A DNA stretch of 64,000 bases from Sminthopsis crassicaudata (GCF_048593235.1 NC_133619.1:649676558-649740557); one strand, 5' to 3'; numbered from the stretch's first letter, positions 37,489 through 43,400 are shown. The notes: generated from the sequence alone by a model not told the origin. A program made the numbers and translations.

Positions 37489-40400
37489 ATGAGTGGACCC
37501 TCGCCTGGGCCCGGGCATCTGCTGAACGTGGTGGCGGTGAGTGTCCCTGCTGCGGAGGAAGGAGCCGGAAGCTTGCAGCCACCTCCCTGGCTGCCAAAGG
37601 CTCGCGGGGGTTGGGGCCACCAAGCCGTCGAGGGACTGGGAGCTCGAGGAGCGGGTGGTCAGGTCACTGAGAGAGTGGGGTCTCTGGGCCTAAAGGGTGG
37701 GCGACGGAGGAAAGTTCCAAAGACCGGGACTGCTAGGTCCCGTCATCCTCTCTGACACCCGCTGGAAGCAATTTTGTGTTCCTTCCGGACACCATCCACC
37801 CACAAGCTTGTCTTGGACGGGCGAGTCGCCGGCTTTGTTCTTCTCCTAGAAGTCCCCGGCCCTGCCTCTGCCCTTGCTCTGGGGGTGAGGAGCCCTCTTT
37901 CTCTTGGCCTGGAGCCAATGGCGATGGCTGAATATTCATGGCAACCGATCCACAGGCTTGGGTTTCCCCCAAACTCCTTCCTCCCTCTCTCCCTCCCAGT
38001 AAATGGGCGGGCTGAGACTGGGGTGAACTTTGTCTGAAGGAGGAGCTGAGAGGGAATTCCAGCCCAGCCCTTCAGCAGAGGCAGAGAGCTCTGATGTCAC
38101 CCTGTAAGTATTCTTCCTAACAGGTCCTGGTGTGCTGGACAGTGTCCTTGGCAGCTGGTGAGTGGCAGACAGCTTCCCGGGCCTTCTGTTTACCCCCAAA
38201 CAGAGGGTCCTTCCCAAGCCAGTCTGGGATGTGTAAGGGCTTTGGGGAATTCCCGGGGTTCCCTTAAGTGCTTCCCTAGCTGACCCTTCTCCTGCCTGAA
38301 TCTCAGCCCAGGTGGAGATCTCAGCCTTGCAGGTGACCAAGCAGACCAATGTCTCAGTCACCCTGAAATGGGAGCCACGTAATGAGAGCTCTCCGAAGTA
38401 TAGCATCACCTGGGCTAAGGACGGCCAGCACATTGGGACAAACAGCACGTCAGATCCTCACTACACTGTGGAGAACCTGGAACCTGGAACCCTCTATGAG
38501 TTCACGGTCACAGTGGACGGAACCAGCCCTGGAAAGAGCCTTAAGGCATCCACCGGTGAGACTTAAAGATAATAAAATATATATTTATACGATTATTTTG
38601 CTGCACAAGAAAATCAAATCCAAAGGGGAAAATATGAGAAAGAAAAGAAAATTCCTGTGATATTTTTAAGCCTTATGGAAAGCCTCAAGTCCCGTGATTT
38701 TAGTGGGAAGAAGGGAGAAGTTTGAAACAAAAGGACCCCTGAAGGCATGAATCTAGGCCCTACTAGGTACTTCTGACTCCTGGACAGCTCCACCTCAAAC
38801 TCAAAGGCTCCTTTGCTGGAGAGCATCTCCCACCAGGGGAATTCCCCACCAGGTCAATCCAGGGCCTCAGTATGTCACCTCTGCTCTTGGGGACTTGGTG
38901 GGGAGATATGGGAAGCCTTCCCCTGCAGACTCTTACTTCTCTCTTCTCATGAAGTACCCAATGAGGTCAGAGAACTCAAGATGACAGCCCGGAGTAACAG
39001 CTCAGTCACCCTGCAGTGGAAGGTCCCTGAGGGCCCCGAGTATACAGACTACACCTACTGGATCAGCTGGACCAGTGAGAATGGCCTTGTTGGGGGAGCC
39101 AGCACAACAGAGACGGAGCATGTGGTGGAAGGCCTGGATCCTGCCACTGAGTACAATTTCACAGTGAAGGCTGAGAGGAATAATGTCAGCAGCTCTGGCC
39201 TGAGCCTCCTGGTGACCACAGGTGAGATGGAGGCTGGGTGTTGGGGTGATGCTGTGGCAGGTGGGACAGGGAGCCTGAGGTCTCCTGAGCACATGATGAG
39301 AGCATGGAGACCTCAGGTTTGAGCCCAGAAATGGCAGCATCTCAGAGCAGGGAGGAACCAGAGGCCATCTCTTCCCACCCTTCATTTTCAAGAAGCCAGA
39401 ACTGGGGGGCTTTGGGGAAAAGAGAAGGGGGAAAAGGGGAAGAAGGCTCCAGCCTTGCATCCTTCAGGGGTTCAGACCTCCCTGAGTTTCCTTTGACTTC
39501 ACAAATTAACCATCATTCTAATCATCTACCATGGGCCCTTCACCTAGCAAGCACCCATAGTGTGCAAGTGTGAGAATAGCAAAGTCATTCACAGCTGGTG
39601 ATCCTGGAACACTGCTTTGTACACAGAACATTTCACTTTGCTTGAGCTCATGGAGGACTTTCAGGTTTTTTCTGAGAGCATCCTGCTCATCATTTCCCAC
39701 AGAACAATAATATTCGATGATAATCCCAGTTTATTCAGCCTTTCCCCAGTTGTTGAGCATCCTCATAATTTCCAATTTCCTGCTCTAAGAGAAGGACTAC
39801 AAATCTCTTTGTACATATAGGCCTTTTTCCTTTTTAAAGGTTTCTCTTGGTTTGCATGTCCAGTAGGGGTCCAAGAATATGACTGAATTCAGATAGTCCT
39901 TTGGGCACAGATCATATCTTTTGCTCATTTATCAGTTAGGGGCTTAGTTTTTATAAATTTGATTCAATTCCCTCTAAGTTTGAGGAGCAAGGCTTATCAG
40001 AGAAACTTGTCTCAAGATTCTTTTTACATTTACTATTGCTGACTGTATGTCCCTGCATTTACTTTATCCTCTCCCTCCTTTCACCCTGTCTGTCCTCAAA
40101 AGTGTTAGGCTACGGACCACTGCCCTCACTACCTTTATTCTAGTAACAATTATTATGGTTCTGTCCAAGGAGTTTTCCTTTATGTGGGTTATACTAATAG
40201 ATGCTGACAATATTAGAAATTAGAACTAATTTGAATTAATGGCTTTCAGAGACCCCCAGGATCCTTGGGAGTGTACTTGGAAACTCCCAGCTCGAGAGCA
40301 GAGTTTCTGTAACTTTTTCCACTCATAAGCTCTTTTTTACTGTGAAACTTTTAATGTGAACCCGTTACATAGGAGCATAGAACAGGTATAGAAAGCAGAA

Positions 40401-43400
40401 ATTTACTGATGTCATAAAAGTTACTTTGAAAACAATTCTTTAGTATATATAAACTTTCATCATTATTTAAGGTGAAAGCAAATTTGTGTATTAATGAGAA
40501 GGACGTGATTGTTTATTTTGATATAAAGAATTGAGTCTTGATGCAATATTTGATACCTTTTTCTGTTGCCAAATTCTTGACCCACATTAGACCATGAGGT
40601 AAGTCAAGGCCAGGTGGTGAAGGGCATTTTTGATCCCACAGGTAACAGGAGGGGCAGGGGGGATGGTTGTGGAGCTGGACCATGACTTAGTTCACTTGTG
40701 CTTTGAGAATATTGCCTTGAGAGACTGGGCAGGGACTGGAGCTGTGCTGGAGCATGGGCAGCTGCTCCCCACTACTTGTACTTCTCTCTTCTCATGAAGT
40801 ACCCAATGAGGTCAGAGAACTCAAGATGATAGCCCGGAGTAACAGCTCAGTCACCCTGCAGTGGGCGGTCCCTGAGCAACCCCTAAATGCAACCTACACT
40901 TACTGGATCAGCTGGACCAGTGAGAATGGCCTTGTTGGGGGAGCCAACACAACAGAGACGGAGCATGTGGTAGAAGGCCTGGATCCTGCCACTGAGTACA
41001 ATTTCACAGTGAAGGCTGAGAGGAATAATGTCAGCAGCTCTGGCCTGAGCCTCCTGGTGACCACAGGTGAGACAGGGGCTGGGTGTTGGGGTGATGCTGT
41101 GGCAGGGGGCACAGGGAGCCCGGGGTCTCCTGGGCACACAATTAGAGCATGGAGACCTCAGGTTTGAGCCCAGAATGGCAGCATCTCAGAGCAGGGAGGA
41201 ACCAGAGGTCGTCTCTTCCTACTCTTCATTTTCAAGAAGCCAGAACTGGGGGGCTTTGGGGAAAAGAGAAGGGGGAAAAGGGGAAGAAGTCTCTAGCCTT
41301 GCATACTTTAGGGGTTCAGATCTCCCTGAGTTTCCTTTGACTTCACTAATTAGCCATCATTCTAATCAATCTATCATGGGCCATTCACCTAGCAAGCACC
41401 CATAGTGTGCAAGTGTGAGAATAGTAAAGTCATTCACAGCTGGTGATCCTGGAACACTGCTTTGTACACAGAACATTTCACTTTGCTTGAGCTCATGGAG
41501 CACTTTCAGGTTTTTTCTGAGAGCATCCTGCTCATCATTTCCCACAGAACAATAATATTCGATGATAATCCCAGTTTATTCAGCCTTTCCCCAGTTGTTG
41601 AGCATCCTCATAATTTCCAATTTCCTGCTCTAAGAGAAGGACTACAAATCTCTTTGTACATATAGGCCTTTTTCCTTTTTAAAGGTTTCTCTTGGTTTGC
41701 ATGTCCAGTAGGGGTCCAAGAATATGACTGAATTCAGATAGTCCTTTGGGCACAGATCATATCTTTTGCTCATTTATCAGTTAGGGGCTTAGTTTTTATA
41801 AATTTGATTCAATTCCCTCTAAGTTTGAGGAGCAAGGCTTATCAGAGAAACTTGCTTCAAGATTCTTTTTACATTTACTATTGCTGACTGTATGTCTCCC
41901 ACATTTACTTTATCCTCTCTCCCCTTTCACCCTGTCTGTCCTCAAAAGTGTTAGGCTACGGACCACTGCCCTCACTACCTTTACTCTAGTAACAATTATT
42001 GTGCTTCTTTCCAAGGAGTTTTCCTTTATGTGGGTTATATTTAAAGATGTTTACCATATTAGAAATTAGAACTAATTATGAATTAAAGGCTTTCAGAGAA
42101 CCCCAGGATCCTTGGGAGTGTACTTGGACACTCCCAGCTCGAGAGCAGAGTTTCTGTAACTTTTTCCACTTTTCCAAGCTCTTTTTTACTATGAAATTTT
42201 AATGTGACCCTGCTGTATAGGAGCATAGAACAGGTATAGAAACCAAATATTTATTGATGTCATGAAAAGTTACTTTGAAAACAATTCTTTAGTATATATA
42301 AACTTTCATCATTATTTAAGGTGAAAGCAAATTTGTATATTCATGAGAAGGACGTGATTGTTTATTTTGATATAAAGAATTGAACCTTGATGAAATATTT
42401 GATACCTTTTTCTGTTGCCAAATTCTTGACCCACATTAGACCATGAGATAAGTCAAGGCCAGGTGGTGAAGGGCATTTTTGATCCCACAGGTAACAGGAG
42501 GGGCAGGGGGGATGGTTGTGGAGCTGGACCATGACTTGGTTCACTTGTGCTTTGAGAATATTGCCTTGAGAGACTGGGCAGGGACTGGAGCTGTGCTGGG
42601 GAGCATGGGGTAGCTGCTCCCCACTACTTGTACTTCTCTCTTCTCATGAAGTGCCCAATGAGGTCAGAGAACTCAAGATGACAGCCCAGAGTAACAGCTC
42701 AGTCACCCTGCAGTGGGCGGTCCCTGAGGAACCCCTAAATGCAACCTACACTTACTGGATCAGCTGGACCACTGAGAATGGCCTTGTTGGGGAAGCCAAC
42801 ACAACAGAGACGGAGCATGTGGTGGAAGGCCTGGATCCTGCCACTGAGTACAATTTCACAGTGAAGGCTGAGAGGAATAATGTCAGCAGCTCTGGCCTGA
42901 GCCTCCTGGTGACCACAGGTGAGACGGGGGCTGGGTGTTGGGGTGATGCTGTGGCAGGTGGGACAGGGAGCCCGAGGTCTCCTGGGCACATGATGAGAGC
43001 ATGGAGACCTCAGGTTTGAGCCCAGAATGGCAGCATCTCAGAGCAGGGAGGAACCAGAGGCCGTCTCTTCCCACCCTTCATTTTCAAGAAGCCAGAACTG
43101 GGGGGATTTGGGGGAACAGGGCAAGAAGTCTCCAGCCTTGCATCCTTCAGGGGTTCAGACCTCCCTGAGTTTCCTTTGACTTCACAAATTAACCATCATT
43201 CTAATCATCTACCATGGGCCCTTCACCTAGCAAGCACCCATAGTGTGCAAGTGTGAGAATAGCAAAGTCATTCACAGCTGGTGATCCTGGAACACTGCTT
43301 TGTACACAGAACATTTCACTTTGCTTGAGCTCATGGAGGACTTTCAGGTTTTTTCTGAGAGCATCCTGCTCATCATTTCCCACAGAACAATAAAATTCAA

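Follow-up and report, generated by a model that had tools for sequence, protein, structure and literature searches.

Two discrete BC-loop forms in a tandem array of FN3 exons in PTPRH of the fat-tailed dunnart

The 64,000-nt stretch of DNA analysed here (GCF_048593235.1 NC_133619.1:649676558-649740557; the window) is the PTPRH locus of the fat-tailed dunnart, Sminthopsis crassicaudata. It contains five tandemly repeated exons, each encoding one FN3 domain, whose sequences fall into two types, A and B, that differ mainly in the short segment encoding the BC loop. The reading that we favour, and to which we give an even chance, is that of a concerted cassette array with a BC-loop island in two discrete forms, kept since the loop is an exposed functional face. 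In this view the five exons are cassettes of the PTPRH ectodomain that evolve in concert, unequal crossing-over and gene conversion keeping the units alike; the short BC-loop island stays in its two forms, form B bearing an extra N-glycan sequon (N30) and dispensing with the usual loop glycine. On such an exposed face, copies that differ would be favoured, or at least not overwritten, and the island would persist. The data show the array, its mosaic, the island and its place in the loop, the constancy of the island within a type and the reappearance of the loop-only pattern in other mammals; selection on the loop, and any role that it may have in ligand, microbe or glycan contact, is what we infer from this pattern.

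Comparison of the units with each other by blastn delimits a tandem array at 38934..48119 on the plus strand, composed of five units of one FN3 exon each; the first four are 1845, 1852, 1886 and 3108 nt long and the last is partial. All five FN3 exons measure 267 nt, are of phase 1-1 and are bounded by AG/GT splice sites, and their loops follow the order A, B, B, A, A, which bears out the assignment of copies 1, 4 and 5 to type A and copies 2 and 3 to type B made in an initial annotation of this DNA. Copy 1 (type A; 38955..39221, plus strand, as are all the copies) is identical to residues 111-199 of P0152, the NCBI protein for PTPRH of S. crassicaudata. The two type B copies carry Gln27 (copy 2, 40800..41066; Pfam fn3 E=4e-11) and Glu27 (copy 3, 42652..42918), copy 4 (44538..44804) is a type A exon with Leu2, and copy 5 (47646..47912) is a type A variant with K31, S34, R36, V62 and A63. 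The VLNE motif of copy 4 and the V62, A63 and R36 of copy 5, all of which had been described at the outset, are present, and the variants of copy 5 are also seen in contigs of sequencing runs X14 and X13. The exons were treated singly, the split first codon being completed with the last base of the preceding exon, and their identity as FN3 domains is clear from PF00041 scores of 43-45 bits against a cut-off of 25. Arrays of repeated exons challenge assembly, and short-read contigs break or become chimeric here, but it is highly improbable that the two loop forms stem from mis-assembled alleles or from sequencing error: two separate units, 5.9% apart over their full length, carry type B, reading frames and splice sites are intact, and P0152 reproduces all five exon copies.

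The differences between the two types are strongly localized. Copies 1 and 2 differ at 16 nt, of which 13 lie within exon positions 66-101 and 2 are synonymous, our recount agreeing with the earlier figures. Fixed differences between types comprise 12 nt of codons 23-32, a single synonymous change at codon 34, the Ser/Asn difference of codon 50 and position +7 of the intron, and the final 81 nt of the exon are invariant across all five copies, slightly more than the 79 nt first reported as identical. From the variable-site table we define the BC-loop islands as codons 23-32, 30 nt each, at 39020-39049, 40865-40894, 42717-42746, 44603-44632 and 47711-47740. Divergence between types reaches 39.4% in these 30 nt, compared with 3.3-3.6% in the exon flanks and 6.5% in the first 200 nt of the intron. 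Within a type the loop differs at 0-1 of 30 nt, with whole units 4.6-8.3% apart; given this stability, the BC loop is not a present-day mutation hotspot. The clustering is non-random, as judged by a 37-nt window scan along the alignment of unit 1 with unit 2 (1843 nt), in which 1/5000 permutations matched the observed maximum, and by a Fisher test of the loop against the rest of the unit (1.9e-9). The other dense clusters of differences in the unit alignment are intronic and all stand beside indels.

Two candidate origins of the A/B loop were rejected. A compensated frameshift does not account for the difference, since a gapped alignment merely reduces the mismatches from 13 to 10 while adding two gaps. 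A local inversion or nearby donor was sought in the window and the compared loci, both by blastn with short words and by a motif search in all six frames, and these matched the two B exons alone.

We took advantage of an AlphaFold2 model of copy 2, built from an alignment of 101 PTPRH FN3 domains (mean pLDDT 95.4), to place these changes on the domain. The model contains seven strands (residues 6-13, 17-23, 34-41, 44-51, 55-59, 66-75 and 83-88), and DSSP assigns residues 24-33 to the BC loop. The A/B residues 23, 27, 29, 30, 31 and 32 map within this loop or to its first flanking residue, so that the structural mapping proposed in the initial annotation puts the loop changes in or at the edge of the modelled BC loop; residue 50 is at the end of strand C'. 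In type B, Gly27 is replaced by Gln or Glu. This glycine is found in 93/131 distinct PTPRH domains, where Gln and Glu are rare, and the glycine of the BC loop (Gly27 here) was singled out as conformationally important by Chicote et al. 2017 (PMC5336234).

The two types also differ in their N-glycosylation sequons, with three per domain in type A and five in type B. This matches the earlier counts, which attributed the difference to an NAT and an NTT sequon in type B. The two sites appear to have different histories. Across 146 PTPRH domains, an N50 sequon occurs in 53, N32 (in the BC loop) in 36 and N30 in 8, the last being carried by both B copies of the dunnart, by five copies from shrew and by one further domain. 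The NAT site (N30) of type B is therefore a true novelty, convergent with shrew. The NTT sequon is decided by codon 50 (39101..39103, plus strand), which is Ser in type A and Asn in type B, and Asn50 is present in all Antechinus copies and most Sarcophilus copies. Given how common the N50 sequon is among PTPRH FN3 domains at large and within these two genera, type A has most likely lost an ancestral site, the reverse of the gain in type B that had been proposed. A similar correction applies to copy 5, whose Ala63 had been described as the loss of a proline and whose Arg36 as a change of YWI to YRI. Both are normal family states, found in 55/131 and 14/131 distinct PTPRH domains, respectively, and copy 5 is therefore not decaying.

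The genealogy of the units changes along their length. Among parsimony-informative sites of units 1-4, 14 consecutive sites group units 1+4 against 2+3; the next five group 1+3 against 2+4, and most of the remainder group 1+2 against 3+4. In unit 1 coordinates the 14-site tract spans 39020..39228 (plus strand), and the sites bounding it, 38956 and 39262, show other groupings. None of 20000 permutations gave a run count as low (P<5e-5), and such runs of differing groupings bear the mark of units that have repeatedly converted or crossed over with one another. In a maximum-likelihood tree of exon and flanking intron with the loop removed, the copies cluster by species (Sminthopsis 100/98) and not by loop type. 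Likeness within species, a mosaic along the unit and, in pika, homogenized exon flanks all mark these arrays as evolving in concert.

With conversion clearly active in the array, and the loop forming a discrete block, free of gaps, in which many codons have changed at more than one base, we entertained the possibility that type B arose by micro-conversion or templated replacement, in which about 36-80 nt would have been copied into one exon from a divergent sequence. We consider this unlikely. Searches of the 64-kb window and of the Antechinus, Sarcophilus, koala, Dromiciops and pika loci, the rest of the genome lying outside their reach, yielded no donor for the B loop. The A/B tract extends over at least 209 nt, yet the two types are almost identical there outside the loop, which makes a donor divergent throughout improbable. 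The original suggestion, that a divergent donor supplied a short conversion tract, is weakened accordingly.

To place the dunnart array in context, the PTPRH loci of Antechinus, Sarcophilus, koala, Dromiciops and pika were compared, as were near-identical domains within each of 20 PTPRH proteins. Divergence in the BC loop far exceeds that elsewhere not only in Sminthopsis (39% against 5.7%) but also in Antechinus (50% against 12.8%), Trichosurus (26.7% against 0.9%), the pika Ochotona curzoniae (17.3% against 2.4%) and Spermophilus (11.7% against 0.6%). The loop-focused, sequon-changing divergence recognized in the initial annotation thus lies far above background and recurs in other lineages. 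At the DNA level, pika exon flanks together with 60 nt of downstream intron differ at 0-2 sites and the loop at 9-15 of 63 nt, and the pika introns are 9-23% divergent or unalignable; the pika exon has plainly been homogenized around a loop island. A second loop type of Antechinus differs from type A by 28.8% in the loop versus 5.7-11.8% in the exon flanks, and Antechinus and Sarcophilus share an identical type A loop core (codons 27-32) even though their flanks are about 12.7% apart.

These comparisons bear on a neutral origin of the two forms, through a complex multi-nucleotide mutation in a tolerant loop that drifted to fixation in one unit and was then shielded from conversion by its own heterology. 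The indel-linked intron clusters of the same units, with 12-13 differences per 37 nt, are in keeping with such an accident, as are domain flanks that are nearly neutral between species (dN close to dS; non-synonymous and synonymous divergence, respectively). We nevertheless regard it as decidedly unlikely, as it would have to befall the same 30 nt, in frame and independently, in at least four lineages, and as the type A loop is more conserved across genera than its flanks.

Pairwise NG86 estimates for the loop give dN of 0.62-0.73 versus dS of 0.23, a noisy dS value derived from just 7.5 synonymous sites; in the flanks dN is 0.008-0.04 and dS reaches 0.08. Another proposal is that B arose from a type A exon within the Sminthopsis lineage, in an adaptive burst that brought many selected point changes to the loop before the exon was duplicated. 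Of 12 marsupial PTPRH proteins, that of Sminthopsis alone showed the B loop, and if descent from the dasyurid type A loop is assumed, this loop has accumulated 11 changes over 30 nt against an expectation of about 2.3 (Poisson P=3e-5). Codon 27, which reads Gly, Glu and Gln across the copies, would record stepwise change. Beyond that series no further intermediates are found among the copies, few dasyurid genomes were sampled, and B is about equally distant from every other known loop (7-11 of 18 nt), lying marginally nearer to the second (C) type of Antechinus and to the outgroup than to type A. We judge such a burst possible but rather unlikely. Within the favoured concerted array, B may be an ancient loop type that survived homogenization, or may reflect a burst of change along the Sminthopsis lineage.

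Several observations weigh against a selected loop island in a concerted array. The intronic, indel-linked clusters reach a density similar to that of the loop cluster. Loop dS is itself raised (0.23), and several codons have changed at two or three bases, possibly in one complex event. The island might also be protected from conversion by its strong heterology alone, with no need of selection. The codon-level comparison is pairwise NG86, and recombination within the array would compromise codon site models of the kind initially suggested. No contig covers the type B exons, including those of a DNA run, and their inclusion in mRNA rests on the NCBI model. Finally, not all of the PTPRH proteins compared conform: those of Sorex, Macrotis, Marmota, Sarcophilus and rabbit show no excess in the loop. 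Present in some lineages and absent in others, the effect is therefore episodic and not universal.

Further features of the arrays deserve mention. Among the read data for the dunnart, one DNA contig resembles a graph chimera through the shared 3' part of the exon. A 297-nt exon-only contig from run X12, probably RNA, corresponds to copy 1 (38957-39219) with G>A at 39038, C>G at 39054 and T>A at 39059; it has Lys29 in the loop together with Ser34 and Arg36, a combination absent from the assembly, and may represent another allele or copy in a different animal. Unit 4 owes its 3.1 kb, in place of about 1.85 kb, to two insertions (45102-45814 and 46455-46999) that units 1-3 lack. The unit introns hold an interspersed repeat (39497-39900, 41487-41885 and 43278-43480) whose summed contig depth in a DNA run is in the tens of thousands, and which is probably a fragment of a very high-copy transposon.

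In Antechinus, the exons at 3006, 5181, 8652, 15631 and 17514 of the compared locus contain a second variable patch, in strand A and the AB turn (codons 8-13), which occurs in two forms with 11 non-synonymous changes versus 1 synonymous change between copies. NCBI isoform models of this species (P0153-P0160), of 1011, 922 and 833 residues, differ by whole 89-residue FN3 cassettes and mix loop types; one has a hybrid loop, and some of the models may be mapping artefacts. The Sarcophilus locus (positions 4665, 6868, 12709, 21274 and 14351) shows an internal segmental duplication as well as FN3 pseudo-exons interrupted by stop codons, and one intact FN3 copy has a 3-nt deletion inside the BC loop. 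In Dromiciops, five FN3 exons of identical protein sequence are spaced at about 890 nt (2473-6306), reflecting a very recent amplification or an assembly effect.

The gene was named by searching protein representatives without profiles and then by a word search. P0152 maps onto the window at 95-100% identity, and since it covers the repeated exons as well as flanking FN3 and phosphatase exons, the window is assigned to dunnart PTPRH. The protein has the architecture of this R3 receptor tyrosine phosphatase, with an ectodomain made of FN3 domains only, one transmembrane segment and one protein tyrosine phosphatase domain, in which the Cys-X5-Arg signature and the WPD loop are present; its C-terminal tail contains a Tyr-Glu-Asn motif (YxN type). 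On the plus strand, a first FN3 exon unrelated to the array copies (38303..38554) precedes the array, a divergent FN3 exon follows it (48321..48527, matched part only), and the phosphatase-domain exon with the WPD loop is at 53455..53622. The gut-luminal location of PTPRH, on which the initial annotation drew, and its link to CEACAM20 are known from work on other species. Elsewhere in the window, a tandem repeat with a 38-nt period (12.7 copies, 96% matches) lies upstream of the FN3 exons at 33077-33557, and an intronic GA-rich repeat with a 15-nt period (49063-49287) is followed by a 404-nt run of N at 49967-50370.

The closest precedent comes from the FN3 arrays of PTPRH (SAP-1) in other mammals, in which each phase 1-1 exon encodes one FN3 domain (Chicote et al. 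2017, PMC5336234). That study concerns the same gene and describes the exon-domain layout that we see in the dunnart; it differs in treating loop lengths between species, and not loop types within an array, a mosaic at the DNA level or recurrence in marsupials and pika. In the literature searched we found no description of natural BC-loop diversification in FN3 arrays.

Other systems share single aspects of the dunnart array. The primate L/M opsin genes and RHD/RHCE are paralogues that conversion homogenizes and in which a few functional positions stay different; in the dunnart, by contrast, the units are exons of one gene read in series, and a whole loop is retained. Dscam and tenascin-C encode variants of one domain in tandemly duplicated cassette exons, which in Dscam are mutually exclusive. 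All five dunnart copies are instead included together in the gene model, and the Antechinus isoform models step by 89 residues. In engineered 10Fn3 monobodies, the BC, DE and FG loops form a binding surface resembling complementarity-determining regions (CDRs) on an invariant scaffold and are diversified in the laboratory. PTPRH likewise has a variable BC loop on a constant FN3 scaffold, any binding by the natural loop being putative.

We know of no extracellular ligand of PTPRH (SAP-1), and the loop-only pattern points to the BC loop as the working face of this receptor. A loop that is constant within a type, radically different between types and able to escape homogenization in several lineages of mammals would mark a specific site for a binding or glycan function. 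A bolder proposal, which we hold rather unlikely, is that BC loops are natural CDR-like specificity cassettes, of which mammals would repeatedly keep at least two types in homogenized arrays, often differing in an N-glycan and perhaps mixed by cassette-exon skipping, with which SAP-1 would read luminal ligands or microbes. Such loops would be a natural counterpart of the loop-grafted FN3 scaffolds of protein engineering, and the pika and dunnart arrays offer two contrasting natural systems for how a short island resists gene conversion.

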